Positions 15,661 through 35,614 of a DNA stretch of 64,000 bases are shown piece by piece (position 1 is the stretch's first letter; the number at the start of each line of letters is the position of its first letter). The notes below the pieces were generated by a model that saw only the letters and a list, made by a program, of their open reading frames with translations, ran no database searches and was not told the DNA's origin. The translations under genes and the position numbers were made by a program. The stretch covers positions 1 through 64,000 of IMG/VR virus record IMGVR_UViG_3300032294_002797; one strand, written 5' to 3'.

Positions 15661-15689
15661 CGCAACCCCTTGACTATAAAGAACTTACA
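15661..15689. repeat. family A single 29-bp site (degenerate)
   Basis: CGCAACCCCTT-N7-AAGAACTTACA; abuts the stop codon at 15690. Confidence 0.6.
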
Positions 15690-15887
15690 TCATTCGGCCA
15701 GAATATCAGGATAAAATTCTTTGATCTCATTCTCCAAAGGCTCATTATCCATCAAGTCTTTACTTTCCACTAACTTTTCATAAGCCCAACTATAAAGAGT
15801 ATCCAAATCCATACCATCTAAGATACTAGAAGCATAAACTCTAATAATATCATCACGATTTTTATCAGTAACAGTAATTATTCCCAT
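15690..15887 (-). CDS. hypothetical protein
   Basis: GGAGA RBS. Confidence 0.7.
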   Translation of the reverse strand: MGIITVTDKNRDDIIRVYASSILDGMDLDTLYSWAYEKLVESKDLMDNEPLENEIKEFYPDILAE

Positions 15888-16170
15888 TCTTTAATCTCCA
15901 CAATATTTTCAGGACCAAAATCCCCAAAGAACTCAGGGTCGGTATATAGTTTATTATTCAGATAATTAGCGATCCTATCCTTATCATAGTCAAGATCATC
16001 GTCTACAATAAGTTCCATACTAATCTTAATTACTTTCATCAGGAACATCTCCAATTACTTCATCAATATACCAATCATAACCCTTATCATCCATCACCCG
16101 TAATTCCTCACTAAGAATCTCAATAGCATTAGTAGCCTCTTGACTATCAGGGTCTTTAATAGAGGGCTCG

Positions 16171-16353
16171 TCAAATATTACAACAATCTTCATGCTTTTT
16201 TCCCTTATTAATTTCAGTCATATAAATATTAGCAACCCTCAAATACATCTCACAATCAGTAAGATACTTCTCATTACCAGTATCCATATACCACTTGAGT
16301 CTTTGACTAGAACAATCTAAGGTATAATTAAGTGATCGAATAATATCCTCCAT
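16171..16353 (-). CDS. hypothetical protein
   Basis: Purine-rich RBS. Confidence 0.55.
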   Translation of the reverse strand: MEDIIRSLNYTLDCSSQRLKWYMDTGNEKYLTDCEMYLRVANIYMTEINKGKKHEDCCNI

Positions 16354-16502
16354 CCTCTTCCTTTCTGCACAATTAAGGTCCGTACAATAACAAAAACTGA
16401 ACCCATAGATATACTATCAGATAGTACAGAAAATTAGGAGGGGGTTCTAATATTTTCATAATACATGCTCCTTAGAACATATATTATAATATACCCCTAA
16501 AA

Positions 16503-16550
16503 CTCGCTGACTATCACTAAGACCGCCAAATCTGTAGGATTAGGTGAGAC
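16503..16550. repeat. dispersed repeat family B copy 2
   Basis: GCTGACTA-N14-AAATCTGTAGGATTA-N5-GAC. Confidence 0.8.
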
Positions 16551-16649
16551 TATAAAAATATCTTATATTGAGAACTAATCTCAACTAATTATTTACTATA
16601 TCTTTTACAACCTTGTTACTATTACAGTATACCACACTCTAAAGGTTGT

Positions 16650-16678
16650 CGCAAGTGGTTGACTCATAAGAACTTAGA
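16650..16678. repeat. family A single 29-bp site
   Basis: CGCAAGTGGTT-N7-AAGAACTTAGA. Confidence 0.6.
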
Positions 16679-16708
16679 ATCAGTAGTTCTTGTTACTATA
16701 TCAATATT

Positions 16709-16755
16709 CTCGCTGACTATCGCCAAGACCGCAAATCCGCTGGATTAGGCGAGAC
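16709..16755. repeat. dispersed repeat family B copy 3
   Basis: GCTGACTA-N13-AAATCCGCTGGATTA-N5-GAC. Confidence 0.8.
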
Positions 16756-16799
16756 AAATTAAAAGATTCTACTCTTTATATTTATAGTTAAGATTTTAA

Positions 16800-16828
16800 C
16801 CTAACCCTTTGTCCCATAAAGACTTACA
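16800..16828. repeat. family A single 29-bp site
   Basis: CCTAACCCTTT-N7-AAAGACTTACA. Confidence 0.65.
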
Positions 16829-16884
16829 TCCACACACCTATCCATTATATCGGCACTGTGGCGTTTTGTCTATAACTTTTTTGA

Positions 16885-16966
16885 CGTAACCCGTTGTGGC
16901 ACTTAAACTTACGACAAAATTTCGGGGCCCGATTTGCCCTAAGTCCTTTGATACCAAGCACTTACG
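16885..16966. repeat. 82-bp double-palindrome element (family A) copy 1
   Basis: 29+24+29 bp architecture. Confidence 0.9.
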
Positions 16967-16984
16967 TCAAATGATGTTGAATCA

Positions 16985-17031
16985 AAAGAGAAAGCCGCAG
17001 CCGGTTTCCCAGCCACGGCTCTCCCCCTTTT
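16985..17031 (-). terminator. intrinsic terminator
   Basis: Long GC-rich hairpin with GAAA-type loop and T-rich tail after the DUF932 gene. Confidence 0.7.
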
Positions 17032-17049
17032 CATCGTGACACGAAAAGA

Positions 17050-17997
17050 TCAGACGGCGTTCGCAAACTCCACTGCGGTATTGAGTGCCTTGAGATTATC
17101 AACTCCGTTCTGGCCGAACCAGAGAGAGTCAAGGCGATTGCTCACATTGCGACCCTTAGTATAATTCAGGTATTCATTGTAGCCGTTATAAGCAGCCCAC
17201 CATGTACCCCGAACCCCCGTTGCACTCTGCTTCGGGCCTTCAACAAGGGCGAGAATCTCGTCCATGATATTGCGGGTACGGGTTTTGATATCCTCGTCGG
17301 GAGTCTTATCAATACCCAGCACCACCTTCACATAACGCTTGATATCTGCTTGATTGAAGTCCTTACTGGCGAGGAACCGATACTGTTCCGCAGTAGCCTC
17401 AAACTGAGCATTGATATTGTCCATAATATCACGCACGTTTTCCAGATTGGTCTTGCTGGAACGAGTGTGACGAATACGAATCAACTGGCTATCCTTACTG
17501 GAGTGAGCAGCCGCAAGCGTATTCACGCACACGACGCGAATCGGAGTATATCCGACGCGAATCGACGTGGTGCCGTCATGGCTGTTCGACAGCAGAATGA
17601 ACTTGCTCACCTCGTCACCGGGAACAATCTCGCTGTTCGAGCGGTTGAGTTGAGCCAGAACCCAAACCTTTTCACCTTCGGAGAGAGAGCCAGCCGTATG
17701 CAACTGGCACTCACCAGCGTCGAGAAACGGCTGGAACCAATCGAAAGCGGCTTGATTCTGGAGCGGCGTATAACGCGGCCCCACAACACCCAGCACGCGA
17801 TTATCATCCTTACGATAGGTAGCCTTGGCATTGACCAATGTACCCTCTGCGGTAAACAAATCCTTTGTGCCAACTTCCCAATCCAGACCAGCAGCGGTAA
17901 TCGCTTCGCCGATAGAGGGATTTTCGTCCAACTGCGTACCCTCACCATGCCAAGGGGTAGCACCAACAAACATCATCTTTTCAACCATAGCAGGCAT
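17050..17997 (-). CDS. DUF932 family phage/plasmid-like protein
   Basis: PWHGEG, AGLDWEV, LGVVGPRYTPLQN, LLSNSHDGT, TPIRVVCVNT and GTWWAAYN motifs. Confidence 0.9.
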   Translation of the reverse strand: MPAMVEKMMFVGATPWHGEGTQLDENPSIGEAITAAGLDWEVGTKDLFTAEGTLVNAKATYRKDDNRVLGVVGPRYTPLQNQAAFDWFQPFLDAGECQLHTAGSLSEGEKVWVLAQLNRSNSEIVPGDEVSKFILLSNSHDGTTSIRVGYTPIRVVCVNTLAAAHSSKDSQLIRIRHTRSSKTNLENVRDIMDNINAQFEATAEQYRFLASKDFNQADIKRYVKVVLGIDKTPDEDIKTRTRNIMDEILALVEGPKQSATGVRGTWWAAYNGYNEYLNYTKGRNVSNRLDSLWFGQNGVDNLKALNTAVEFANAV

Positions 17998-18039
17998 AAT
18001 CAACCCTTTCGTGTTATCGTTCTTCGTTCAACTGTACTG

Positions 18040-18068
18040 ATTCTACACTATAGATATCGGCCTGTCAA
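18040..18068 (-). promoter_or_regulatory. sigma70-type early promoter with CCGATA box
   Basis: TTGACA-ggCCGATAtctatagtg-TAGAAT. Confidence 0.8.
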
Positions 18069-18096
18069 GCAGAAAACTTGCGAAAAAATTTCGTGA

Positions 18097-18178
18097 CGCA
18101 AACCCTTGTCGCACAAGCACTTACGTCAAAATCGGCCCGCCCGATTTGCCCTAAGTCTTTGCTGGGGCAGGATTTAGG
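18097..18178. repeat. 82-bp element copy 2
   Basis: 29+24+29; contains the stop codon of 18151..18657. Confidence 0.9.
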
Positions 18179-18657
18179 AGAGGCACCCGGAAATCCTTCT
18201 CAAACATTTTAACCGTGTCTGAGCGATAAGCACATTCGTCTGGCATATAGCAATAAACACCTACACACTGTGCTTTGGGACAATCTTCATGGATAGTATT
18301 TTTAATATGCCTAATGGTTGAGCCAGAGCAAACTAGATCATCAACAATAATGTATCTGAATGGAGTTACTCCCTCCATAGGAAAATCGCTGTAGCATTTC
18401 TCATCTGGCTTACGAATAAGAACAATATGTTTTTTCAGTAATTCAGCAATTTGTGGAACAACAACAAGTCCACTCACACCACAACAAGCAATACTATCAA
18501 ACTCGTTAGCAATCTTTCTTAGATCACAAACAGCCTTGATAATAACTTTGTTTCTGGCCTGATGATTTAATACCCTGCAAGTGTGGCTAGCACCTTGAAT
18601 AATCTTACCATCTTCGGTGCGTCTAAAGTCTTCAACCATATTATTCATCACATTCAT
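18151..18657 (-). CDS. phosphoribosyltransferase-like protein
   Basis: PRPP-binding motif YIIVDDLVCSGST; IACCGVSG; LIRK. Confidence 0.8.
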   Translation of the reverse strand: MNVMNNMVEDFRRTEDGKIIQGASHTCRVLNHQARNKVIIKAVCDLRKIANEFDSIACCGVSGLVVVPQIAELLKKHIVLIRKPDEKCYSDFPMEGVTPFRYIIVDDLVCSGSTIRHIKNTIHEDCPKAQCVGVYCYMPDECAYRSDTVKMFEKDFRVPLLNPAPAKT

Positions 18658-18748
18658 AAAAACGGACGGTACGATTTGAACGTACTAGAAAGAAAGGAAA
18701 GAAAGAATAGATACTTGTCCCACCAAGTTGCGTCCGTTCAGAAAAGAT

Positions 18749-18943: not shown

Positions 18944-18993
18944 CTCTTTTCTCCTTTGAAAACTATCATACACCAATCAGCCGGTTTGTCAAG

Positions 18994-19066
18994 TGGGGCC
19001 TGTGGGACTCGAACCCACGACCAAAGGTTTAAAAGACCCTTGCTCTACCAACTGAGCTAAAGCCCC
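18994..19066 (-). tRNA. trnK: tRNA-Lys(TTT)
   Basis: Full cloverleaf, anticodon loop CT-TTT-AA, TTCGA T-loop; own promoter. Confidence 0.95.
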
Positions 19067-19106
19067 TACTTTGTATAGTTTATCCTATCGCTTCCATATT
19101 GTCAAG

Positions 19107-19178
19107 TGACCCCAATGAGAATCGAACTCATATTAACAGATTGAAAGTCTGCTTTCCTAACCATTAGAAGATGGGGCC
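19107..19178 (-). tRNA. trnE: tRNA-Glu(TTC)
   Basis: Cloverleaf, loop CT-TTC-AA. Confidence 0.9.
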
Positions 19179-19309
19179 ACTCCCGCAACTCAACGTCAGC
19201 CTCCGTTTTGCTATTGTACATAATCGGTATTCTGTTGTCAAGACTTGAGTTGTTTTTGAATCGAAATGGTGTATAATGACTTAGTGAGTTGTACTACAGG
19301 AGTTCCATT

Positions 19310-19798
19310 ATGAAATGTATTAATTGTAATAAAGATACAGATAACCCTAAATTTTGCTCTAGATCATGCGGAGTGTCTTATAACAACAGAGTAAAACCAA
19401 AAAGAATTAAAAGAATGCAAACATGTATATTTTGTAAAAATCAATTTCATTCTTTACATAGTTATAATCAAAAATATTGTAATAAAAAATGTTTACAAAA
19501 TCATAGAGAGCACAATATCCAAACCAATGGTTTTGGAGAAGGTCATTATCATAATAATTCTATTAGAAAATACCTAATTAAAAAACATGGTAATCATTGT
19601 ATGATCTGTAACCAGTCTGGAGATAATTGGAACGGTAAGCCAATTACTTTAATTGTGGATCATATTGATGGTAAATCTAATAACAATAAACTAGATAACC
19701 TTAGAATTGTTTGTCCTAATTGCGATAGTCAACTACCTACATACAAAGCAAAAAACAAAGGAAATAGCACTCGTAGTTATTTTATAGTCCAAAAGTAA
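19310..19798 (+). CDS. HNH endonuclease inserted in tRNA cluster
   Basis: FCSRSC and YCNKKC Zn motifs; VDHIDGKSNNNKLDNLRIVCPNC; GGTGTA upstream; AGGAG RBS. Confidence 0.9.
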   Translation: MKCINCNKDTDNPKFCSRSCGVSYNNRVKPKRIKRMQTCIFCKNQFHSLHSYNQKYCNKKCLQNHREHNIQTNGFGEGHYHNNSIRKYLIKKHGNHCMICNQSGDNWNGKPITLIVDHIDGKSNNNKLDNLRIVCPNCDSQLPTYKAKNKGNSTRSYFIVQK

Positions 19799-19799
19799 A

Positions 19800-19874
19800 T
19801 AGGGCGTGGAGGAGTCGAACCTTCCCTTTTTTTCACCTTATAAGAGTGACTGCCACTACCGGCGGCAACGCCCC
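19800..19874 (-). tRNA. trnI: atypical tRNA-Ile(TAT)
   Basis: Acceptor GGGGCGT/ACGCCCT, anticodon arm TCACT-CTTATAA-GGTGA, TTCGA; short D-loop and T-stem mismatch. Confidence 0.65.
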
Positions 19875-19924
19875 ATATGAGTATCATACACTATCTATCG
19901 TCAGTTGTCAACCCCAATCTTTAG

Positions 19925-20009
19925 CGGAATCTGAGGGATTCGAACCCCCGGAGGATTTCTCCTCGTCGGTTTAGTAAACCGGTGCATTAGACCACTCTGC
20001 CAAGATTCC
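19925..20009 (-). tRNA. trnS: tRNA-Ser(ACT)
   Basis: Type II cloverleaf with long variable arm, G73, loop TT-ACT-AA. Confidence 0.85.
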
Positions 20010-20012
20010 AAA

Positions 20013-20084
20013 CTGGCGAGACAGGATTCGAACCTGTAACCTAGCGGTTAACAGCCGCTTGCACTACCGTTGTGCTACCCGCCA
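20013..20084 (-). tRNA. trnN: tRNA-Asn(GTT)
   Basis: Cloverleaf, AGCGG-CTGTTAA-CCGCT. Confidence 0.92.
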
Positions 20085-20089
20085 TCAAT

Positions 20090-20161
20090 TTCCGGAGCAT
20101 GGGTACGATCCATGAATAAACGGACCAAAGCCGTTTGTGATACCAGTTTCACCACTCCGGA
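20090..20161 (-). tRNA. trnQ: tRNA-Gln(TTG)
   Basis: Cloverleaf, AACGG-CTTTGGT-CCGTT; atypical T-loop ATCGTAC. Confidence 0.8.
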
Positions 20162-20164
20162 GCA

Positions 20165-20235
20165 AGCCCACAACTAGAATCGAACTAGTATTAGATGATT
20201 ACAAATCAACTGTATTACCATTATACTATGCGGGC
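20165..20235 (-). tRNA. trnT: tRNA-Thr(TGT)
   Basis: Cloverleaf, loop TT-TGT-AA. Confidence 0.85.
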
Positions 20236-20240
20236 GAAGC

Positions 20241-20429
20241 CTACATATCATAGTCCTGACGCCAACCCCTGTCAATATCACGACGGGTACGCTGACGCTT
20301 GGGACGGTTATCAAACAACGTATTACGTTCTTCTCGGTGTCCAGTAGCCAACTCCCACGGTTGCTTGACCTTGACCTTGATCTTATTGTGGTTGCGTTGG
20401 GGTCGAGTATCGTCGTTGAGGTGGTGCAT
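20241..20429 (-). CDS. basic hypothetical protein
   Basis: Arg-rich small ORF; start uncertain. Confidence 0.55.
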   Translation of the reverse strand: MHHLNDDTRPQRNHNKIKVKVKQPWELATGHREERNTLFDNRPKRQRTRRDIDRGWRQDYDM

Positions 20430-20637
20430 AGTCAAACCATTGTCCATTATCGTGTAAATAAAAAACCTTGTCAATATTAGGATCGTACGCCATTAAACAG
20501 TATTGTACCGGATAAACTGGTTTTGTCAACTGTTTTTGTGGAAGTTTAGGAAGTTTAATATCGCCCTTTTGATAGTCTTTTACACCAGTATAGGCTAAAC
20601 CTAATAGTGCAACGATTACCCCAATCCATTGGATCAT
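20383..20637 (-). CDS. membrane-anchored hypothetical protein
   Basis: AGGAGA RBS, N-terminal TM segment; follows promoter 20660-20688. Confidence 0.7.
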   Translation of the reverse strand: MIQWIGVIVALLGLAYTGVKDYQKGDIKLPKLPQKQLTKPVYPVQYCLMAYDPNIDKVFYLHDNGQWFDYAPPQRRYSTPTQPQ

Positions 20638-20659
20638 CAATTCTCCTTTGCGTCTAACT

Positions 20660-20688
20660 AGCATACCATACTTATCGGCAATTGTCAA
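20660..20688 (-). promoter_or_regulatory. sigma70-type early promoter with CCGATA box
   Basis: TTGACA-attgCCGATAagtatgg-TATGCT. Confidence 0.8.
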
Positions 20689-20705
20689 GCGACTCTTTAG
20701 TTTTT

Positions 20706-20787
20706 CCTAAGTACTTGAGACATAAGCACTTACGTCAAATTTTCGCCGCCCCGTTCGTCCTAAGTGGTTACCCACAAAGGACTTAGG
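20706..20787. repeat. 82-bp element copy 3
   Basis: 29+24+29. Confidence 0.9.
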
Positions 20788-20794
20788 AAGAGTT

Positions 20795-21031
20795 TTATTC
20801 TTCTTCCAGGCTCCAACCGGCTTTTCTTACCACCTTAGTAGTTTTATATACTTTAGTATCTGGTAATGCAGTAGCGTAGTCTTTGAATCCTCTTTCATCA
20901 AGATAAAAATGTTCGTCGAGCGTGTCAAATTTATTAGTCTCCCATAATGCTGCTACAGCAGCGTCCAGAGGTTTTTGATTAGTAGAGTAAATAAGTTGTA
21001 GTGTGCCAGATTGTATATAATACTTAGCCAC
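20795..21031 (-). CDS. hypothetical protein
   Basis: GTG start with GGAGG RBS, overlapping the upstream stop. Confidence 0.65.
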   Translation of the reverse strand: MAKYYIQSGTLQLIYSTNQKPLDAAVAALWETNKFDTLDEHFYLDERGFKDYATALPDTKVYKTTKVVRKAGWSLEEE

Positions 21032-21623
21032 TATACCCTCCACCACATTTGTAGCATGAGCAATATTCATATTCGTCCCCGCCCGTTCCTTCGGCCCAAC
21101 AAGGTTCCTCATACTCACCAATATCACCAAGGCTTTCACGACCAACATCTACAATAACCAATACTTTATGCTTACCTCTTTTTACATATCCAAGATTAGC
21201 ATTATGAGCATCTGTATAGGTTATCCCAAACATTTCTTCAATATCAACTATCATTCTGTTGATAACTTCGAAATTTTCGCACAGGTCATTCTCATAACAG
21301 TAGCCATCGCATTGCCTACACTTGAGCGGTGAAGCAATTTCGGTCAAGTATCCCCACTCGCTCAGTACCAATTTTTCCTCGGCTTTATAACCACCCTTGC
21401 CGTCTGATACTGCAAAATAGTTAGGAATCCGTATTCTGCAAACTGGACTATAAACACGCGGAGTAAAAGTACACGGTTCAGATAGTTCGCTCTGTATATG
21501 ATGAGCAAACTCGGCTAAACTTTTATTAGGAAAACTTTTGAATCCGTATCGGCTACCTTTCATTTTATAGAAAGAGTTTTTGCTTCCCCCATCGGCATAT
21601 TTACCAATATATTTAGTAGTCAT
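21024..21623 (-). CDS. protein kinase-like fold protein
   Basis: Gly loop DGGSK, beta3 Lys (GFKSF), catalytic DAHNAN, DFG-like DVG. Confidence 0.65.
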   Translation of the reverse strand: MTTKYIGKYADGGSKNSFYKMKGSRYGFKSFPNKSLAEFAHHIQSELSEPCTFTPRVYSPVCRIRIPNYFAVSDGKGGYKAEEKLVLSEWGYLTEIASPLKCRQCDGYCYENDLCENFEVINRMIVDIEEMFGITYTDAHNANLGYVKRGKHKVLVIVDVGRESLGDIGEYEEPCWAEGTGGDEYEYCSCYKCGGGYSG

Positions 21624-21632
21624 TACATTCTC

Positions 21633-22343
21633 CTAATGAGAGGGAAACAAAACATTAGCCAGACCACGAACACAAAGATCACAGTGTACGCTATTTTTGC
21701 TTTTTGTACAAGTCACAACGCCACGACCACGACGGATTTCCGGGCAAGTGATAAACTTCTCACCCTCTAATACAACGAGTTTAGGCAACGCTTCTCTCCA
21801 TGCGGCGGCTTTAGCCTTGCCGCGAGGACGCTTGGGAGCGATTTTAGTATCACTATCGCACCATGCGAAAAGTTTGAAACCAGCCGCTTTCGCTTGTTTC
21901 ATATCTTCACCGTCGTGGATACTAGCATACATATTTATATACTTGCCAAGTTGAGTAGACAATTTAGTATCATAAATATGGGTATAAGCCCACATAGTCG
22001 GCAGACTACCGCCACTGGCAAGAATACTCTCACAAGCCCACAATACATTATCTACATACTCATGGTCGAGTTCGCCATACTTGAAAAAGTCTCCACGCTC
22101 ATGCCAGCGAACATCTTTATTTTTCTTGACAGCATCCACAAGCATGGCACGGATACGATTTTTTTCCGTGATAAGATTTTGCATACCGGCAGGACGCACA
22201 CCGGGATAGATATTTTCCAAGTCCTCGGCATAGCATCCGTTCCCGAGAAAATCACAATCGCTAGGGCAAGTATCGCCAACGGGGCGACTCACTACGATGC
22301 AATTTTCTTTGCCCAACTTGTCATTACCATTTGCTGTTTTCAT
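21633..22343 (-). CDS. Gp88-like Cys-rich (putative Fe-S) phage protein
   Basis: TCPSDC...GCYA, VRWHERGDF, WAYTH and C-terminal CP...C...CxxC. Confidence 0.7.
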   Translation of the reverse strand: MKTANGNDKLGKENCIVVSRPVGDTCPSDCDFLGNGCYAEDLENIYPGVRPAGMQNLITEKNRIRAMLVDAVKKNKDVRWHERGDFFKYGELDHEYVDNVLWACESILASGGSLPTMWAYTHIYDTKLSTQLGKYINMYASIHDGEDMKQAKAAGFKLFAWCDSDTKIAPKRPRGKAKAAAWREALPKLVVLEGEKFITCPEIRRGRGVVTCTKSKNSVHCDLCVRGLANVLFPSH

Positions 22344-22364
22344 ATTCTTTCTCCTGTGCTACTG

Positions 22365-22393
22365 ATTCTACATTAGAGTATCGGCAGTGTCAA
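22365..22393 (-). promoter_or_regulatory. sigma70-type early promoter with CCGATA box
   Basis: TTGACA-ctgCCGATActctaatg-TAGAAT. Confidence 0.8.
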
Positions 22394-22421
22394 GAGAAAA
22401 ACTTTGGCAAAAATATTTTGA

Positions 22422-22503
22422 TGCAAGTCCTTGCTGCATCAGCAGTTACGTCAAAATCGGCCCCGCGAATTCGCCCTAAGTCTTTATGCTGCAACAACTT
22501 AGC
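22422..22503. repeat. 82-bp element copy 4
   Basis: 29+24+29; abuts the tRNA-Asp 3' end. Confidence 0.9.
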
Positions 22504-22576
22504 GAGAGCGACGGGACTTGAACCCGCAACCTCCAGCGTGACAGGCTGGCGATCTAACCAATTGATCTACGCTCCC
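22503..22576 (-). tRNA. trnD: tRNA-Asp(GTC)
   Basis: Cloverleaf, CCAGC-CTGTCAC-GCTGG. Confidence 0.95.
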
Positions 22577-22579
22577 AAA

Positions 22580-22651
22580 TAGCCCCAAGAGGAATCGAAC
22601 CTCTAACCAGTGCTTAGAAGGCACTTGTTATATCCATTTAACTATAGGGCC
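22580..22651 (-). tRNA. trnR: tRNA-Arg(TCT)
   Basis: Cloverleaf, AGTGC-CTTCTAA-GCACT. Confidence 0.92.
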
Positions 22652-22717
22652 ATAATACCGATAGCCGCCAGTTATTCACCAGCGGCATCTCGGTTTATTA
22701 TAGCATATCGTAGATGC

Positions 22718-23165: not shown

Positions 23166-23247
23166 CCTAAGTCGTTGAGTATCAAGCACTTACGTCGAAT
23201 TTTCGCGGCCCGCCTCGCCCTAAGTTCTTTAGGGACAAGGCTTTAGG
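23166..23247. repeat. 82-bp element copy 5
   Basis: 29+24+29; abuts the stop at 23248; contains an exact IHF consensus TATCAAGCACTTA. Confidence 0.9.
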
Positions 23248-23619
23248 TTACGAGAGATAACCCTCACAACCCAAACCCGCAAGATCACGCAGCAGATTTT
23301 CCGCCGCTTCGGGAGTCTTGAGCGTGATGCTCTGCTTGGTGTTTGTAGCAGCAGGATACCACCTATCGCCCTTCCAACCACCCACCAGAAAATCCGTCCA
23401 CTCCTTACTTTCCTTCAGACCCCAGCCGGTGTGGAGTCGAATAGCCTTGATGCAAGGAATCCGGTTGTCAAGACTCATACCGCCCGTGATAGTAACGGTC
23501 TTGAGTTGATTCACGCCCAACGCAACCTCAAAAGCATTCACGATCCTGTCGTAAATGTCACGGTTGCAATTGTTGGACAGTTCAAAAGCCTCACGGACGC
23601 TCAGTTGCAGATTAATCAT
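23248..23619 (-). CDS. ribosomal protein bL12 (L7/L12) C-terminal-like domain protein
   Basis: RIPCIKAIRLHTGWGLKESKEW resembles KIxVIKxVRxxTGLGLKEAK. Confidence 0.7.
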   Translation of the reverse strand: MINLQLSVREAFELSNNCNRDIYDRIVNAFEVALGVNQLKTVTITGGMSLDNRIPCIKAIRLHTGWGLKESKEWTDFLVGGWKGDRWYPAATNTKQSITLKTPEAAENLLRDLAGLGCEGYLS

Positions 23620-24098: not shown

Positions 24099-24145
24099 AT
24101 CGACATTCTACCTTAAAAACTTTAATTGTCAAGTACACCTTAGTC

Positions 24146-24192
24146 TGGCTGACTATCAGCAACGGCAGCAAATCCGTAGGATTAGGCAAGAC
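24146..24192. repeat. dispersed repeat family B copy 4
   Basis: GCTGACTA-N14-AAATCCGTAGGATTA-N5-GAC. Confidence 0.85.
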
Positions 24193-24279
24193 AAGCAGAT
24201 TGGGTTATGCCATACTCGGCCTTACATTTAACCGTGGCTTCTTTGATATCATTCTGCCAGCGGCCCTCATCTACTTATC
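24190..24279 (-). ncRNA. candidate small RNA (~90 nt)
   Basis: Own promoter 24287-24315; 11-bp closing helix with two G-U pairs on minus strand; no ORF. Confidence 0.5.
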
Positions 24280-24333: not shown

Positions 24334-24415
24334 CCTAAGTGCTTGTCCCATAAGAAGTTACGACAAATTTTAGCCGCCGAATTTGCCCTAAGTCCTTATC
24401 CTACAATGAGTTACC
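24334..24415. repeat. 82-bp element copy 6
   Basis: 29+24+29. Confidence 0.9.
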
Positions 24416-26326: not shown

Positions 26327-26408
26327 TGTAAGGTGTTGGAGGATAAAGACTTACGACAAATCCGGCGGCGCAAATTCGCCCTAAGTCCCCTTGGGCAAAG
26401 AACTTAGA
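26327..26408. repeat. 82-bp element copy 7
   Basis: 29+24+29. Confidence 0.9.
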
Positions 26409-27071: not shown

Positions 27072-27135
27072 ACAGACCTCTCTTTCTGCACCAATCATAT
27101 CATAATACAGACTATTTGTCAAGAGCCCATTATTT

Positions 27136-27182
27136 TGGCTGACTATCGCCCATAACCGCAAATCCGTAGGATTAGGAGGGAC
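27136..27182. repeat. dispersed repeat family B copy 5
   Basis: Consensus match; contains the stop of 27172..27333. Confidence 0.85.
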
Positions 27183-27333
27183 AGGATATACGTTCAACTA
27201 AAATATAGTCGCCATATTTTTCTTTGGCTTTTCGTAGAGCATCATATTCGCTCATAGCAACAACGTATCCAACAAAACGATTGTGTTGGAAAACTCGCCA
27301 TGAAATACCGGAATAGCAAAATGTAGTGTTCAT
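27172..27333 (-). CDS. hypothetical protein
   Basis: Probably leaderless, under promoter 27340-27367; ends CPS-stop inside repeat B. Confidence 0.6.
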   Translation of the reverse strand: MNTTFCYSGISWRVFQHNRFVGYVVAMSEYDALRKAKEKYGDYILVERISCPS

Positions 27334-27386: not shown

Positions 27387-27468
27387 CGTAAAGTCTTGTG
27401 GTATAAGGAGTTAGATCAAATTTTGCGGCGCGCCCTCGCCCTAAGTGCTGCCGTAGCAACAACTTAGG
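27387..27468. repeat. 82-bp element copy 8
   Basis: 29+24+29. Confidence 0.9.
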
Positions 27469-28003: not shown

Positions 28004-28085
28004 CATAAGTCGTTGCAGCATAAGGAGTTGCGTCAAATTTTGCGGCACCCGCTCGTCCTAAGTGCTTACACACCAAGGGCTTACG
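28004..28085. repeat. 82-bp element copy 9
   Basis: 29+24+29; contains the stop at 28081. Confidence 0.9.
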
Positions 28086-28366: not shown

Positions 28367-28448
28367 CGTAAAGCGTTGAGACATAAGGAGTTACGTTAAA
28401 TTTTGCGGCGCCCCCTCGCTCTAAGTTCTTTGGCGGTAAGGGTTTGCG
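28367..28448. repeat. 82-bp element copy 10
   Basis: 29+24+29; contains the stop at 28421. Confidence 0.9.
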
Positions 28449-29058: not shown

Positions 29059-29140
29059 CATAAGTCTATATCCCATAACAACTTACGTCAAATTTTCGCC
29101 GCCCCGCTCGCCCTAAGTGCTTACGCACCAAGGGTTTGCG
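29059..29140. repeat. 82-bp element copy 11
   Basis: 29+24+29. Confidence 0.9.
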
Positions 29141-30451: not shown

Positions 30452-30533
30452 TGTAAGTCTATGGCAGATAAGGAGTTACGTCGCGGCGGGCGGCGCCGCC
30501 TTGTCCTAAGTACTTTAGGCTCAAGGCTTTACG
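30452..30533. repeat. 82-bp element copy 12
   Basis: 29+24+29; abuts the stop at 30534. Confidence 0.9.
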
Positions 30534-30845
30534 TCAATTTCCCACAACCATACCGTCTATAAACGGATAGGATTTATCGTTGATTTTCACAAACCATTCG
30601 AAATTCTTTTGATAAACATAACGTGGGCTATACTGGTTAATTCGATCTTTAGTAGTCAGAGTTTGCCAGCCACCACTATTCAGTGTATAGGTATCATCCT
30701 CATGAATCTTCACCACATAGGTGCTGTGTAGTCTAATTCCTACGCTACCATCATGCAGAATTTCAGCGTAAGTATTATTACCAACCTTGCGAGTATCCCG
30801 ATTAGTCTTACCACGAACCATACTAACTGCTTCGGAATGATTCAT
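30534..30845 (-). CDS. hypothetical phage protein
   Basis: LNSGGWQTLTTKDRIN motif typical of small phage early proteins. Confidence 0.75.
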   Translation of the reverse strand: MNHSEAVSMVRGKTNRDTRKVGNNTYAEILHDGSVGIRLHSTYVVKIHEDDTYTLNSGGWQTLTTKDRINQYSPRYVYQKNFEWFVKINDKSYPFIDGMVVGN

Positions 30846-31069: not shown

Positions 31070-31151
31070 CTTAAGTCGTTGGAATATAAGGAGTTACGTC
31101 GAATTTTGCGGCGCAAATTTTCCCTAAGTGCTTATGCAGTAAGGGTTTGCG
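31070..31151. repeat. 82-bp element copy 13
   Basis: 29+24+29; contains the stop of 31132..31293. Confidence 0.9.
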
Positions 31152-32013: not shown

Positions 32014-32042
32014 TTTAAATCCTTATTTCTCAACACTTTACG
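32014..32042. repeat. family A single 29-bp site
   Basis: TTTAAATCCTT-N7-AACACTTTACG. Confidence 0.65.
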
Positions 32043-32086: not shown

Positions 32087-32168
32087 CGTAAACCCTTGGC
32101 AGATAAGGAGTTACGTCAAATTTTGCGGCGCCGCCTCGCCGTAAGTGCTTATACAGCAAGGCTTTGCG
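32087..32168. repeat. 82-bp element copy 14
   Basis: 29+24+29. Confidence 0.9.
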
Positions 32169-32543
32169 TCAACTATTTACAACCCAGGCCGCTATACATC
32201 CGATCACGAATGAACAAAACAGCATAATCTGATCATTCTTTATCATTTTTTCTATGATCCTTTGAAGGGTAAACCAAATCAGAAACAAGCCAACTGCACC
32301 CAATACCCACCACAAATCCCACAAACATCCAAATCCATTCTACATTTAGATCGGCCATCCCTAGCACCCCTCTTTAGTTTTTATTCTACAGGAATTTTAC
32401 TGATCATGTACCCTAAGAAAAACCCTAGAGTCACAATAAAATTTAGACCCATCAAATATACAAGAATATTCATAAACCTTCACCTCTCTTTTCCACATTC
32501 TATACTATTATCGGCCTGCGTCAAGCCCAAGGTACAGTCTTTT

Positions 32544-32590
32544 TGGCTGACTAAACCCACTCAGCCCAAATCCGCAGGATTACCTGGGAC
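32544..32590. repeat. dispersed repeat family B copy 6
   Basis: Consensus match; contains the stop of 32580..32750. Confidence 0.85.
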
Positions 32591-32750
32591 ACTTATCCAT
32601 CACAGTATCCAGATATATCCCATCTTTACTCACAACCCATCCATATTCTACATCTTGCCCATAGACCCCAATATAACACCGACCTTTATCACACCCTTCG
32701 ATCTTGCACTCATAACCCACCAGACCCATCAACATAACCCAAATTGCCAT
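32580..32750 (-). CDS. hypothetical protein (56 aa)
   Basis: MAIWVMLMGLVGYECK...DKCPR-stop; AAGGA upstream. Confidence 0.5.
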   Translation of the reverse strand: MAIWVMLMGLVGYECKIEGCDKGRCYIGVYGQDVEYGWVVSKDGIYLDTVMDKCPR

Positions 32751-32788
32751 AGTTATCCAGAATCCTTTCTTTGACCAGACTATGTTTT

Positions 32789-32835
32789 TCGCTGACTATA
32801 CCCAACCTACCCAAATCCGTAGGATTACGTGGGAC
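32789..32835. repeat. dispersed repeat family B copy 7
   Basis: Consensus match; contains the stop of 32825..33031. Confidence 0.85.
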
Positions 32836-33031
32836 AAGAGAACAGTTCTACATCCGAAATAACTCGCACACACTTTTTGTTTTCGTCTACTTCATAGACT
32901 GAGCAATCGTACTGATATAAAAAACGATTACCGATATCTCTTTGCCAGACTACCCTTGCTTCATCCAGACTATCATACAGACGGTAATCTTGAATGAAAC
33001 CATCAAACACTATTGCAAACTTATTTTTCAT
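32825..33031 (-). CDS. hypothetical protein
   Basis: Ends CPT-stop inside repeat B. Confidence 0.65.
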   Translation of the reverse strand: MKNKFAIVFDGFIQDYRLYDSLDEARVVWQRDIGNRFLYQYDCSVYEVDENKKCVRVISDVELFSCPT

Positions 33032-33042
33032 TTTCTAACTTT

Positions 33043-33270
33043 CTACGAAACCGAAACCATAGAGGGATTCTTACGAAACTCCATAGCATACAATTCATCG
33101 ACCACAACCCGGACTACAGTATCCATGTTTACGTTTTTATGAGTGTGGTATCCGATCACGTTTGACCAGACATTGTATGTTCCATCCAAATTGTGCATGA
33201 TAGTCATATCAGCCTTTTTTGCATAGGCATGGATTTTGCTACGAATCGTACTAGACTTAGGAATTTTCAT
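33043..33270 (-). CDS. hypothetical protein
   Basis: Start moved to MKIPKS; polypurine leader; TTGACG/TATAAT promoter upstream. Confidence 0.65.
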   Translation of the reverse strand: MKIPKSSTIRSKIHAYAKKADMTIMHNLDGTYNVWSNVIGYHTHKNVNMDTVVRVVVDELYAMEFRKNPSMVSVS

Positions 33271-33347
33271 TTTCTTTTTCTTTCTTTCTCTTTCGACTAT
33301 TATACCAAACTTTTTCGCCGCCGTCAACCCCCTTATCGGGGGAGACA

Positions 33348-33551
33348 CTAGATTTTCCAACAGGCAAAAACCAGCGTAAACTGTGCATTCGGATACTTCG
33401 ACCGAATGTACGCTTCTGCTGTAGACTTCCTATTGTCCGTAGCACTCACACCTTGCACAGTCTTACCATCTATCACAACATTCCAGATTCGACGCTTGCG
33501 AATCTTAGGGAGACTACCGATAAAACTGTTGACACTGATAACTTTTTCCAT
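33348..33551 (-). CDS. hypothetical protein
   Basis: Polypurine leader. Confidence 0.65.
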   Translation of the reverse strand: MEKVISVNSFIGSLPKIRKRRIWNVVIDGKTVQGVSATDNRKSTAEAYIRSKYPNAQFTLVFACWKI

Positions 33552-33610
33552 TTTCTTTCTCTAACTTTCTAAACTTACCTAACTTACCAAAATCCCCCGG
33601 ATAGAGCAGA

Positions 33611-33772
33611 CTATGCTGCTTCACCATCATCGTAACCGGGAATATAGTCGGCATCGTCTGCGACTAATTCACAATGTTCACCACAATCGGGACAAATACC
33701 GTAGTCCATTCGGATACCGGTCATCTCAACTCCACAGCAATCCGAAACGTAATCAAAATCAGGATTTCTCAT
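33611..33772 (-). CDS. small Zn-ribbon protein (53 aa)
   Basis: MRNPDFDYVSDCCG...ICPDCGEHC; directly below the sigma54-type promoter. Confidence 0.65.
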   Translation of the reverse strand: MRNPDFDYVSDCCGVEMTGIRMDYGICPDCGEHCELVADDADYIPGYDDGEAA

Positions 33773-33804
33773 TCTAACTCTCTCTTTCTTATGCCATATA
33801 TAAA

Positions 33805-33820
33805 TGCACTTCCCGTGCCA
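33805..33820 (-). promoter_or_regulatory. sigma54 (-24/-12) promoter
   Basis: TGGCACGGGAAGTGCA = GG-N10-GC; no sigma70 promoter seen in this cassette head. Confidence 0.6.
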
Positions 33821-33842
33821 AACCCAAAAATATTTTTTGTGT

Positions 33843-33871
33843 CGTAAAGTGTTGCCCCATAAGGGTTTACG
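33843..33871. repeat. family A single 29-bp site
   Basis: CGTAAAGTGTT-N7-AAGGGTTTACG, between the sigma54 promoter and enhancer-like boxes. Confidence 0.75.
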
Positions 33872-33903
33872 ATTTTGCTTAGTTCGTGAGCAGCGTCTGC
33901 CTA

Positions 33904-33983
33904 TGTAGCATTATGCAACAGTGCTGTAGCATTTTGCGTCGCGTATTTCGGCCTAAAACATTAAAGTGAAGCAAATTGCAACA
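33904..33983. promoter_or_regulatory. three phased palindromic boxes (enhancer/UAS-like)
   Basis: TGTAGCA-N3-TGCAACA-like at 33904, 33925 and 33967 (21 and 42 bp apart). Confidence 0.55.
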
Positions 33984-33999
33984 CCACAATATATAGTGT
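33984..33999. promoter_or_regulatory. NrdR-box-like operator
   Basis: CCACAATATATAGTGT, 15/16 match to consensus acaCwAtATaTwGtgt. Confidence 0.55.
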
Positions 34000-34030
34000 G
34001 CCTCAAAATTAGGCACCACAAGGCACTTGC

Positions 34031-34112
34031 CGTAAGTCGTTACCACATAAGCACTTACGTCAAATTTTTGGGCGAAAATTCGTCGTAACTCCTTACATAG
34101 CAAGGGTTTACG
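34031..34112. repeat. 82-bp element copy 15
   Basis: 29+24+29. Confidence 0.9.
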
Positions 34113-34131
34113 TCGAACTTTTTAGGCTTTA

Positions 34132-34344
34132 TTACTTATTCCAATTAACATACCACTCTTGCCCATCTTGGCTCATCGTGCGAAGGAACCCACGCTTCCT
34201 CCAGTACCTATCTTGCATATACTGGTCATATATTCCCCATACCTTAGCAAATACCCAAAATCCCACATTACCCACAAGGTATAGAAACCCAAACATGAGA
34301 GAGATGGTCACAACCCACATACCCATAATCCAAAGCGTAGTCAT
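34132..34344 (-). CDS. small membrane protein
   Basis: Hydrophobic N-terminal half. Confidence 0.7.
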   Translation of the reverse strand: MTTLWIMGMWVVTISLMFGFLYLVGNVGFWVFAKVWGIYDQYMQDRYWRKRGFLRTMSQDGQEWYVNWNK

Positions 34345-34358
34345 TTGTTTTTCCTTAG

Positions 34359-34544
34359 TTAGTTAGCAAAACCAATATAGTCGCAAACCACACACTTGTC
34401 AAGATACATGGATCGGAAACCCACATTCTCGATTTCCATGGTAAACAGGAGACGGTTTCCATTCATATACTTGAACGAAACCACCTTACCCGTAAACTTC
34501 TCACCCGTACCGTACTCAACCGAAAGAATGTTTCCAATCGTCAT
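34359..34544 (-). CDS. hypothetical protein (SH3-like)
   Basis: Start moved to MTIGNI; TTGAAT/TATAAT promoter upstream. Confidence 0.65.
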   Translation of the reverse strand: MTIGNILSVEYGTGEKFTGKVVSFKYMNGNRLLFTMEIENVGFRSMYLDKCVVCDYIGFAN

Positions 34545-34660
34545 TTTCTTTTTCCTTTTCTCTTGTGTGTTTCTATTATACATACTTAATCGACCAATTC
34601 AAGAGAAAAATCCAGAAAATTTCAAATATAATTTCATGCCAAAGTTTAAAAAAATCTTGC

Positions 34661-34742
34661 TGTAAGTCGTTACGTAGCAAGTACTTACGTCAAATTTTTG
34701 GGCAAAAATTCGTCGTAACTCCTTATGCTGTAAGGGTTTACA
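34661..34742. repeat. 82-bp element copy 16
   Basis: 29+24+29; linker nearly identical to copy 15. Confidence 0.9.
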
Positions 34743-34770
34743 TCGAGTTTTTTGTACAGTGTACAGAAGA

Positions 34771-35085
34771 TTACCCCTCTGAGAAGGGGGATACTTCTTC
34801 TCCACACTCCATAATCGCGGCATATTGTGAGGCGAGAGCCTGCACACGCTCAGATGAGCCAGGCTTTCCCACACGCATGATCATATGATCAGTACCCCCC
34901 ACAAAGCGGGGATCGTTCTTTTCCACCTTACGCTTGCCCATATTCTTCAGGGCGGTTCGGTTGAATTTGATCACCTTCTCAACTTGGATATCTTCACCAT
35001 CTATGTTTTTCACTTCGGTAGGGATTGCTATTCCCAGGAAAACCATTCTGGCTTGTCGTTTTGCATTTCGGATAATCGGATACAT
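34771..35085 (-). CDS. hypothetical protein, paralog of 31296..31664
   Basis: Clear end-to-end similarity. Confidence 0.85.
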   Translation of the reverse strand: MYPIIRNAKRQARMVFLGIAIPTEVKNIDGEDIQVEKVIKFNRTALKNMGKRKVEKNDPRFVGGTDHMIMRVGKPGSSERVQALASQYAAIMECGEEVSPFSEG

Positions 35086-35126
35086 TTCTTTTTCTTTCTG
35101 TTTAGAGTGTAGGATTGTTGGATAAC

Positions 35127-35357
35127 TTAGGGAAGCCAGGCATCATCCACAACATAGCCCATCTCGTCAACTTCAATCCAACCACCATCATCACAGAATC
35201 CAATTTCCTCATCTATGTTAATCTGGTTAAACTTATTAACCCTTGCCAGAAGATCACCAGCAAAAGCAACCCTATTCACCAGAGTATCGAGCGAAGTCTT
35301 ATTGAGGAACTCGGTCAACTCAGTCACAGTATTCAGAACAATCAGGTTAGCAAACAT
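35127..35357 (-). CDS. hypothetical protein
   Basis: First gene of the leftward region; polypurine leader; TTGAAG/TATAAT promoter. Confidence 0.7.
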   Translation of the reverse strand: MFANLIVLNTVTELTEFLNKTSLDTLVNRVAFAGDLLARVNKFNQINIDEEIGFCDDGGWIEVDEMGYVVDDAWLP

Positions 35358-35487
35358 TTTTCTTTCTCTCTTTTTTCTCTTTTTCTTATATCGACATTAT
35401 ACCATGCTTTCTTGAAACTTCAAGAGAAAAATAGGAATTTTTATGTCAAGAGATTTTGACAAAACTTTTACGATTTATCGGCCCGAT

Positions 35488-35521
35488 TGGCACACCTTTT
35501 GCTATCGCAAGAGTCATGCCA
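35488..35521. promoter_or_regulatory. face-to-face pair of sigma54-type sites
   Basis: + TGGCACACCTTTTGCT (35488-35503) and - TGGCATGACTCTTGCG (35521-35506), both GG-N10-GC. Confidence 0.55.
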
Positions 35522-35532
35522 AAAAAAGTTGT

Positions 35533-35614
35533 TGTAAGTGCTTGTGGCATAAGGAGTTACATCAAATTTTTGGGGGCAAATATACCCTAAGTCCTTATAC
35601 CACAATAGGTTAGG
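35533..35614. repeat. 82-bp element copy 17
   Basis: 29+24+29; rightmost copy, no adjacent gene end. Confidence 0.9.

Follow-up and report, generated by a model that had tools for sequence, protein, structure and literature searches.

In T4-like phages, the early region is described as a hyperplastic stretch of small ORFans, in which repeated PeSL (promoter-early stem-loop) cassettes combine a stem-loop terminator, an AT-rich tract and a near-consensus sigma70 promoter in front of the next gene and are associated with replacements and indels between relatives (PMC2839356, PMC4122927). In E. coli, RIB/RIP (BIME-1) elements carry two G+C-rich REP hairpins around one IHF site at the 3′ ends of transcription units (Boccard and Prentki 1993, as cited in PMC3333891), and REP/BIME elements at these ends bind IHF or gyrase and act as topological insulators (PMC3333891). 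Single, asymmetric sites for a DNA-bending protein lie upstream of the UP/−35 region of IHF-assisted phage early promoters (lambda pL, Mu Pe) and of Fis/UP-activated rrn promoters, where they act from one face of the helix. SPO1 encodes the HU-family protein TF1, which depends on hydroxymethyluracil DNA and binds preferred sites of about 37 bp near early promoters. Mycobacteriophage stoperators are asymmetric 13–14 bp sites in short intergenic gaps, oriented with transcription, bound by the lysogenic repressor and spread over the whole genome.

Here we describe a module of different architecture in an uncultivated 223-kb phage (IMG/VR record IMGVR_UViG_3300032294_002797), of which positions 1 to 64 000 were analysed (the window). 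This phage and hundreds of its relatives carry a fixed-length 82-bp element composed of two protein-binding-type palindromes exactly 53 bp apart, which lies between the end of one early gene unit and the promoter of the next. Nothing like it was found in deposited phage genomes. An initial annotation of the sequence had reported 17 intergenic copies and five lone sites, and had proposed that they form a phased protein–DNA scaffold.

Results

The presence and layout of the element reported in the initial annotation were confirmed. All 17 copies are ungapped (29 + 24 + 29 bp) and lie on the coding (minus) strand. A position weight matrix built from the family finds exactly these 17 copies in the 64 kb, all in minus orientation (70–92 bits), and none left of 16.8 kb or right of 35.6 kb. 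The pattern proposed for the 29-mer, TAA-N4-TT-N7-AA-N4-TTA, is met exactly by 21 of the 34 half-sites and within one mismatch by 31 of 34, while the 29-mers starting at 16885, 22422 and 26380 have two mismatches. The window contains 47 matches at ≤ 1 mismatch compared with 16.8 ± 4.5 in shuffled sequences. The sharper form YAA-N4-TTR-N5-YAA-N4-TTR gives 26 matches against 0.38 expected. Five lone 29-mers were confirmed on the minus strand, of which those at 15661–15689 and 16650–16678 overlap a −35-like hexamer, those at 16800–16828 and 33843–33871 are site-B-like, and that at 32014–32042 lies 19 nt before the −35 hexamer of promoter 31994.

To find out whether the element is a family trait, we searched relatives in IMG/VR, which yielded 555 distinct copies. 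In loci chosen only by terminase, 115 site pairs are 53 bp apart, 3 are 54 bp apart and none is 52 bp apart; constancy of this spacing in relatives had been set beforehand as a condition for the proposal. Some relatives, however, carry only single sites (relative L159) or none in about 6 kb (relative L155), although they keep the gene for a conserved 72-aa protein (see below). Element-bearing contigs in MAG collections are binned to many unrelated phyla and thus do not allow us to say whether the host has IHF.

Counting the conserved TTGA…TCAA flanks, the element consists of two 37-bp dyad-symmetric sites whose centres are 53 bp (five helical turns) apart and which are separated by a 16-bp G+C-rich core. 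Within each dyad only A/T steps are invariant (TAA at positions 3–5, TT at 10–11, AA at 19–20 and TTA at 25–27). The TT and AA steps lie 9 bp apart and T26 lies 6 bp from A20, and this holds on both sides of each dyad. IHF kinks DNA at two sites about 9 bp apart, and the T of TTR lies 6 bp from the nearest kink (PMC5829579). Specific binding by IHF/HU goes with a bend of about 160 degrees at E. coli-type sites. The invariant steps thus have the geometry of an IHF/HU U-turn site applied symmetrically, although placing the kink at the AA step is our inference. The initial annotation had noted a resemblance of each half-site to the IHF core with an exact match in copy 5. This has to be corrected in so far as the 13-bp E. 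coli consensus WATCAANNNNTTR is not enriched: the window has 7 exact matches against 9.0 expected by chance, and only one of them lies in an element (23180–23192, in copy 5). The resemblance is therefore in the core and its geometry, not in the full consensus.

For a detailed test of secondary structure, we examined pairing in the 555 distinct copies. Watson–Crick pairing at variable positions equals the expectation, both within each 29-mer (pairs i/30−i) and between sites A and B (pairs i/83−i), with many A·C and C·A oppositions, and counts of G·U versus A·C show no strand preference. The central region has a mean folding energy of −6.27 kcal/mol against −6.24 kcal/mol for shuffles, no U-tract follows the stems and no Rfam family matches there. 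By these criteria the element is not an RNA or cruciform structure. An RNA-level element, in which two hairpins would act as a 3′ stabiliser, a processing site or a non-canonical terminator, is therefore very unlikely, even though the element is transcribed as the 3′ trailer of genes and of a tRNA and each palindromic 29-mer could form short A-U-rich stems. The element has neither the G+C-rich hairpin with a directly following U-tract of an intrinsic terminator nor the stem-loop of a PeSL, and the complementarity of arms that characterizes REP/BIME palindromes and the long hairpin of REPIN doublets is absent. No RAYT (Y1 transposase) was found among the 92 ORFs of the window, which covers 64 kb of the 223-kb genome.

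The order gene end, element, A/T tract, promoter was confirmed in the window and statistically in relatives. The distance from the element to the −35 hexamer was determined in the window (all copies on the minus strand). Copy 1 (16885–16966; 70.8 bits) has the hexamer 12 nt downstream. Distances of 17, 18 and 19 nt were found for copies 3 (20706–20787), 6 (24334–24415) and 8 (27387–27468), respectively. Distances of 27–30 nt were found for copy 10 (28367–28448; 27 nt), copy 2 (18097–18178; 28 nt), copy 4 (22422–22503; 28 nt), copy 9 (28004–28085; 28 nt), copy 7 (26327–26408; 29 nt), copy 11 (29059–29140; 29 nt) and copy 13 (31070–31151; 30 nt), and distances of 37 and 38 nt for copy 12 (30452–30533) and copy 5 (23166–23247). 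In copy 16 (34661–34742) the hexamer lies 58 nt downstream. Copy 14 (32087–32168) is followed by the lone site at 32014 and then a promoter, copy 15 (34031–34112) has no clear promoter downstream, and copy 17 (35533–35614), the first in the direction of early transcription, is followed by an inverted sigma54-like motif pair.

In relatives, a strict promoter lies within 150 nt downstream in 235 of 441 copies and upstream in 8 of 441. With a relaxed definition only 256 of 441 copies have a downstream promoter, although many of the rest show variant TTGCAA-type promoters. Among 242 copies with a confident orientation, 153 have a downstream promoter and none has the reverse arrangement. The distance from the end of the element to the −35 hexamer is quantised, with peaks at 18, 28–29, 39–40 and about 51 and almost nothing between. 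The Rayleigh R is 0.57 at a period of 10.5–11.5 bp, against a null maximum of 0.29 (p < 5e-4). This pattern survives clustering of the spacers, but it could partly reflect modular A/T spacer blocks rather than a direct contact. About 20 equally good promoters in the same region have no element, so the element is not needed for promoter function as such.

At its other end, the element directly adjoins the upstream unit, starting 0–28 nt after, or overlapping, the upstream stop codon or tRNA 3′ end, and often supplies the stop codon. Ends of upstream stop codons peak at 0, +5 and +28 relative to the element start. In the window, copy 2 overlaps the last 28 nt of gene 18151–18657, copy 4 abuts the 3′ end of tRNA-Asp, and copy 5 is directly preceded by the stop codon of gene 23248–23619. 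The ORF upstream of copy 9 stops at the element's own TAA (positions 3–5), that upstream of copy 10 ends 28 nt inside the element, and copy 12 is directly preceded by the stop (TGA of the flank). Terminator-like hairpins are not enriched (19 found against 14 expected) in this region with about 38 strong co-directional promoters. These data would be compatible with a protein roadblock that mainly stops RNA polymerase coming from the upstream unit, protects the next promoter from occlusion and separates supercoiling domains, as an insulator comparable to the REP/BIME elements. However, a pure roadblock needs no fixed helical face relative to the −35 hexamer, and many gene ends in the same region lack the element. 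We therefore regard this as an unlikely primary role, with termination at the element being inferred from position alone.

To examine whether the element serves as a shuffling site, cassettes and flanks were compared between relatives. Cassette content and order differ between them, and 43 of 51 upstream-flank groups are joined to more than one unrelated downstream flank. Homology end-points lie inside the element in 85 of 114 cases, against 60% expected (p = 0.0015), and cluster at positions 38–47 and 66–71, that is, in the G+C core and in site B. Orthologues of copy 12 follow the same gene in relatives, and site A travels with the upstream gene while site B changes. Homologous exchange between repeats has been proposed for PeSLs (PMC2839356, PMC4122927). 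On the other hand, promoters without the element are junctions at a similar rate (18 of 34 upstream groups and 18 of 27 downstream groups), so the element is not the only shuffling site, and recombination does not explain the invariant A/T steps, the exact 53-bp spacing or the phasing to the promoter. The initial annotation had also pointed out that the 11-7-11 geometry fits tyrosine-recombinase sites. Tyrosine-recombinase core sites and integron attC sites have two inverted arms around a 6–8 bp overlap that is identical between partner sites. This shape is present, but the 7-bp centres are nearly random between copies (entropy 1.8–1.9 bits at positions 13–17 and 1.8–2.0 bits at positions 66–70), which is incompatible with strand exchange by tyrosine recombinases between copies. 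Moreover, breakpoints are spread from position 1 to 82, and no integrase or recombinase family was found among the 92 window ORFs. A recombination module as the primary role, whether by homologous exchange or by a dedicated recombinase, thus seems unlikely.

A selfish small mobile repeat (MITE, REPIN or Correia-like) without function for the phage was also considered, since there are many dispersed intergenic copies with inverted-repeat character and the region differs in G+C content from the rest of the window. This is very unlikely. The whole element shows no hairpin complementarity between sites A and B, the flanks (TTGA/TCAA) are inverted and not direct duplications, orientation is strictly tied to transcription, orthologous copies stay with the same gene across relatives whose protein is 60–100% identical, and the length never varies. 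No transposase was found in the window and no isolate bacterial genome has multiple copies. Where the element is missing after the orthologous gene, the whole downstream cassette differs, so that no clean empty site was seen.

Two candidates for a binding protein emerged from the phages themselves. A PF00216 HU/IHF gene (E = 2.5e-27) lies in an element-flanked cassette in a sub-lineage of 16 loci, whereas no HU/IHF gene is present in the 64-kb window. The second is the 72-aa protein encoded at 35873–36091 (minus strand), which the initial annotation had singled out as a possible binder. It is the first early gene and has its own terminator at 35839–35818. The protein is conserved in 76 loci with an invariant RRQRRKL and a nearly invariant RGRP motif; its model is a confident three-helix HTH, followed by an RGRP AT-hook-like tail. 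It is a candidate only, as inferred from sequence and predicted structure.

Discussion

The interpretation given in the initial annotation was partly supported. It had listed activation or insulation of cassettes, titration of a host nucleoid protein, help with DNA entry and shuffling without choosing between them. Our data support a DNA-level, protein-binding-type, helically phased element that is not a hairpin, its link to cassette boundaries and promoters, its positional resemblance to PeSLs with a different architecture, and the occurrence of breakpoints inside it. The tyrosine-recombinase reading and the exact IHF consensus were not supported, while titration and DNA entry remain purely hypothetical. 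The helical phasing to the −35 hexamer, which the initial annotation had not noticed, points to a promoter-coupled architectural role.

We tentatively favour the view that the element is a bent nucleoprotein boundary and upstream element of early promoters, and only secondarily a crossover point. In this view, a dimeric DNA-bending protein occupies both dyads and folds about 90 bp of upstream DNA into a compact, same-face double bend. This protein might be host IHF/HU, the phage HU/IHF homologue that some relatives carry or the conserved 72-aa HTH/AT-hook early protein. The bent complex would set the activity of the adjacent near-consensus sigma70 promoter, with its A/T (UP-like) tract, by wrapping upstream DNA and contacting RNA polymerase from one face, and it would mark and shield the boundary with the upstream unit. 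As a conserved repeat at cassette borders, the module would also be a frequent crossover point for cassette exchange between relatives. The anatomy, phasing, orientation, conservation and breakpoints are established by our analysis, whereas protein binding, bending and the direction of the effect on transcription are deduced from them.

A more far-reaching, but unlikely, possibility is that the elements are the cis-sites of a dedicated viral mini-chromatin boundary system. A phage-directed bending protein, either a hijacked host IHF/HU or the 72-aa protein, would fold each ~90-bp module into a full same-face turn and partition the first-expressed ~20 kb into topologically and transcriptionally insulated loops of about 1 kb, whose promoters are tuned by helical phase. 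The same nucleoprotein sites would serve as standardised joints that let accessory-gene cassettes be swapped between co-infecting relatives without breaking regulation.

Repeated regulatory cassettes are thought to drive the plasticity of phage accessory regions, but the only described type, the PeSL, is a promoter plus a stem-loop. The element described here is a different solution, conserved in hundreds of copies across a large, abundant and so far uncultivated clade of ~200–240 kb phages from aquatic metagenomes. If a bending protein binds it, it would be a compact, portable promoter-boundary part and a natural test bed for how upstream DNA architecture and helical phase control strong sigma70 promoters. 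It would also give a sequence marker for the early region of this clade.

Among described systems, PeSL cassettes share with this element the repeated composite intergenic layout in an early region full of small ORFans, the order of structure, AT-rich tract, near-consensus sigma70 promoter and next gene, and the junctions between relatives. Here, however, the stem-loop terminator is replaced by a fixed-length double dyad that is helically phased to the promoter, and the phage clade is unrelated, the best terminase match being 26% identical, to Bacillus siphoviruses. Compared with BIME-1, which is likewise a dispersed repeat at 3′ ends with a composite palindromic layout and an IHF-type site, the layout is inverted, with two IHF-like dyads around a G+C-rich core. 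Furthermore, the element has no GTAG-tagged REP, sits in a phage rather than a chromosome, is tied to a downstream promoter and has an invariant length. The single sites at lambda pL, Mu Pe and rrn promoters contrast with a symmetric two-site module reiterated 17 times per genome in which the full IHF consensus is not enriched. With SPO1, relatives of this phage share a phage-borne HU/IHF-family gene, here in a module-flanked cassette, and sites of about 37 bp in an early region, but no such gene was found in the window and no comparable repeated two-site module is known to us for SPO1. Stoperators resemble the element as many short protein-binding sites in short intergenic gaps oriented with transcription, but differ in their length of 13–14 bp, their asymmetry, their binding by the lysogenic repressor and their spread over the whole genome.

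Genomic context of the element

The window covers positions 1-64000 of the 223,302-bp IMG/VR contig IMGVR_UViG_3300032294_002797, which belongs to a tailed phage. Terminase (39462-41495, position 39462 of the contig; locus L122 in our collection of IMG/VR terminase loci), portal, head and fibre genes are located on the plus strand from 36.3 kb onwards, including a single ORF of 4690 amino acids in the structural region (47946-62018, plus strand), which is followed by a fibre-like gene at 62020-63186. The first gene of this rightward late or structural block, divergent from the early region, encodes a sigma-factor-like protein (36299-36955, plus strand; Sigma70_r2, E 7e-6). From 36.1 kb down to 1 kb about 90 small genes and nine tRNA genes lie on the minus strand. 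The tRNA genes (Lys, Glu, Ile, Ser, Asn, Gln, Thr, Asp and Arg; 18993-22652, minus strand) are situated within the element region, several of them with their own promoter. The early region (1-36000) and that of relatives carries HNH endonuclease, endonuclease VII, Lar-like, ERCC4, Hsp20, DUF932 and phosphoribosyltransferase-like genes as well as a paralogous small-protein family that is often the first gene after a promoter. The G+C content is 38-46% between 16 and 36 kb compared with 28-35% in 1-16 kb and 30-38% in 36-64 kb. Megablast and blastn searches with the region returned no match among deposited phages, and the best terminase match is only 26% identical, to Bacillus siphoviruses. In contrast, more than 600 IMG/VR stretches encode a terminase that is 76-100% identical, many of them on contigs of 175-238 kb.

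The 82-bp element is a family trait with invariant geometry

The initial annotation described 17 length-invariant double palindromes and five lone sites in the early region, and this observation was borne out. All 17 copies align without gaps as 29+24+29 bp. A position weight matrix built from the family detected exactly these 17 copies in the 64 kb, all on the minus (coding) strand and none in the late region or left of 16.8 kb. The relaxed 29-mer pattern gave 47 matches against 16.8 expected and recovered the five lone sites at 15661, 16650, 16800, 32014 and 33843, while the symmetric core YAA-N4-TTR-N5-YAA-N4-TTR gave 26 matches against 0.38 expected.

A two-site pattern scan of IMG/VR hit at least 120 stretches, which on large contigs form one continuous block of about 20 kb, and relatives supplied 555 distinct copies. 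In loci selected only by terminase, and hence not biased by the pattern, the two sites were 53 bp apart in 115 cases, 54 bp apart in three cases and never 52 bp apart. On the coding strand the family consensus reads cgTAA..ccTTg.....tAAg.acTTAcG for site A,.c.ag...Ggccggcc...tTtGa for the centre and CgTAAgt.cTTa.....cAA.gacTTAcg for site B, and conserved TTGA...TCAA flanks extend each dyad to 37 bp. Some relatives have only single sites with a centre-like piece (locus L159) or none in about 6 kb (locus L155). To test whether the element is a repeat family of a host, we scanned bacterial and archaeal genomes. Only single chance hits in AT-rich genomes were obtained, and multiple copies occurred only on short contigs of MAGs binned to many unrelated taxa. 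We take the latter to be mis-binned phage DNA, and no host was inferred. A literature search revealed no prior description of the element.

The element shows no sign of RNA structure

At variable positions the number of Watson-Crick pairs equalled the number expected from column composition, both within each 29-mer and between sites A and B, and a REPIN-type long hairpin between the two sites was rejected on this evidence. A.C oppositions were frequent, and counts of G.U against A.C showed no strand preference. The strongest mutual information was found between neighbouring bases and reflects the half-site variants TAAGT, TAAAC and TAAAG. The central 24 nt fold at -6.27 kcal/mol on average compared with -6.24 kcal/mol for shuffled sequences, a scan with the Rfam gathering thresholds found only tRNAs, and terminator-like hairpins were not enriched (19 against 14 expected). 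An RNA element and an intrinsic terminator were therefore rejected.

Conserved positions resemble the core of an IHF site

Only A/T steps are nearly invariant, namely TAA at positions 3-5, TT at 10-11, AA at 19-20 and TTA at 25-27, and the same holds for site B. IHF kinks its site at two steps about 9 bp apart, and the T of TTR mutated in H'44A lies 6 bp from the nearest kink (PMC5829579). In the 29-mer the TT and AA steps are 9 bp apart and T26 is 6 bp from A20, on both sides. The site therefore reads as a symmetric doubling of the CAA-N4-TTR core, although this is an inference from geometry. The full consensus WATCAANNNNTTR is not enriched, with seven matches against nine expected, one of them in copy 5. 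Conservation limited to A/T steps between variable, G+C-rich positions suits indirect or minor-groove readout better than a classical helix-turn-helix operator, which is likewise our inference.

The element mostly lies between a gene end and the next promoter

On the coding strand every copy in the window follows a gene or tRNA end, one of them abutting tRNA-Asp. Thirteen copies are followed within 12-38 nt by a near-consensus promoter, and one more at 58 nt. We extended the analysis to 441 distinct copies from relatives with 400-bp flanks. A strict TTGACN-N16-18-TANNNT promoter was present within 150 nt downstream of 235 copies and upstream of eight. Among the 242 copies whose orientation was confidently called, 153 had the downstream promoter and none had the reverse arrangement. 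The end of the stop codon of the upstream ORF peaked at 0 (the TGA of the TTGA flank, 69 cases), -1 (36 cases), +5 (the TAA of the element, 48 cases) and +28 (TAG, 22 cases). Thus, the element supplies stops in all three frames.

The distance from the element end to the first base of the -35 hexamer proved to be quantised, a feature that the initial annotation had not reported. We counted 28 copies at 18 nt, 72 at 28-29 nt and 27 at 39-40 nt, with smaller groups near 51 and 62 nt, whereas only two were found at 20-24 nt and none at 45-48 nt. The spacers within each class are diverse, and the pattern survived clustering at 30% divergence. The Rayleigh statistic was 0.57 at periods of 10.5-11.5 bp compared with at most 0.29 in 2000 jittered controls. 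The copies in the window alone show distances of 12; 17, 18, 19; 27, 28, 28, 28, 29, 29, 30; and 37, 38 nt, and the lone site at 32014 lies 19 nt from its promoter. By our calculation this places the centre of site B near -68, -79, -90 and -100, always on one face. This is the main argument that the element works together with RNA polymerase at the next promoter rather than only ending the previous unit.

In total, about 38 near-consensus sigma70 promoters were detected on the minus strand between 16300 and 36200 (102 promoter-like sites against 51 expected), many with a conserved GCCGATA in the -35/-10 spacer and a cAAGA/AAAGA motif about 8 nt before the -35 hexamer. The same promoter type also occurs at 3.2, 6.6 and 10.5 kb. 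About 20 equally strong promoters in the region lack the element, and some of these have a second, different upstream repeat. This second family, GTC-N6-TAATCC-N3-GGATTTG-N13-ATAGTCAGC, comprises eight copies on the minus strand (12571-12656, 13971-14056, 16477-16562, 16682-16767, 24119-24204, 27109-27194, 32517-32602 and 32762-32847). Three of them lie about 15 nt before a TTGAC -35 hexamer that has no 82-bp element, and no covarying structure was found. In two of the lone 29-mers (15661-15689 and 16650-16678) the right arm reads CTTGCG/GTTGCG and provides a -35-like TTGCGN hexamer 17 nt before a TATACT -10, so that a binder would sit on the promoter there.

Just downstream of the element at 35533 an inverted pair of exact sigma54-type -24/-12 motifs (TGGCAY-N5-TTGC) is located at 35488-35521. 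In relatives (loci L001-L200 of the IMG/VR collection) the reverse-complement motif sits 8 or 12-13 nt after the end of 71 of 441 elements, and the forward motif follows 27 of them. The lone site at 33843 is followed 22 nt later by TGGCACGGGAAGTGCA (33806-33820). These motifs could represent a second operator or real sigma54 promoters with an IHF-type site upstream.

Candidate binding proteins

Among the 92 ORFs of the window that were searched (86 early ORFs of 50 amino acids or more plus six others), none belongs to the HU/IHF family according to Pfam and PHROGs, and tblastn likewise detected no HU/IHF gene in the window. In a sub-lineage of 16 IMG/VR loci (L067, 2948-3223, minus strand; also L045, L055, L076 and L321-L335), however, a 92-aa PF00216 protein (E 2.5e-27) with the usual RNPxTG arm is encoded in the second cassette after the first early gene. 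Elements flank this gene on both sides, and one starts directly after its stop codon.

The second candidate is the 72-aa product of the first early gene (35873-36091), which the initial annotation had singled out. It is conserved in 76 loci, with invariant RRQRRKL and a nearly invariant RGRP motif, and the gene has its own terminator. The protein is predicted with confidence to form a three-helix bundle (pLDDT 94-95 over residues 10-50). A sequence search of the family against PDB gave nothing, and a fold search returned only statistically weak matches (E >= 0.55) to HTH DNA-binding domains, such as the small-terminase N-domain of phage G20c. Pfam gave a sub-threshold AT-hook, and a tblastn search of deposited phages with the protein found no match. 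Co-occurrence of AT-hook variants of this protein with the presence of elements pointed in neither direction. Binding of either protein to the element remains a hypothesis.

The element as a crossover point

Between elements lie one to eight ORFs. The last gene before an element stays linked to it across relatives, while promoter-proximal genes vary. After the orthologue of gene 30534-30845, site A and the centre are conserved while site B and what follows differ. A first mapping of breakpoints from HSPs of three close pairs yielded only 44 breakpoints, too few data, which leaned towards promoters; it was replaced by anchored comparisons. In these, 43 of 51 upstream-flank groups were joined to more than one unrelated downstream flank. 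Of 114 homology end-points, 85 lie inside the 82 bp, against 60% expected for the detectable range (p=0.0015), with clusters at positions 38-47 and 66-71, although these events are only semi-independent. Promoters without an element are junctions as well, in 18 of 34 upstream groups (less than for elements, Fisher p=0.003) and in 18 of 27 downstream groups (no different from elements). The element is therefore a frequent crossover point, as any conserved repeat would be, but not a dedicated or unique one. A tyrosine-recombinase or attC site, the former having been considered in the initial annotation, was rejected because the centres are variable, breakpoints are spread and no recombinase was found in the window.

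Comparison with known systems

The interpretation offered in the initial annotation, a phased protein-DNA scaffold at cassette borders or alternatively a shuffling site, was supported in part. The layout of the element, its orientation, its phasing to the promoter and the breakpoints were read directly from the sequences, whereas occupancy by a protein, bending of the DNA and any influence on transcription are inferred. We tentatively favour a bent nucleoprotein module that would act as an upstream element and boundary of early promoters, with a putative binder and an effect on transcription of either sign. In position the module is a PeSL-like cassette joint (PMC4122927) and a BIME-1/RIB-like 3'-end repeat with IHF-type sites (PMC3333891), but it lacks the hairpin that defines both and differs from them in architecture.
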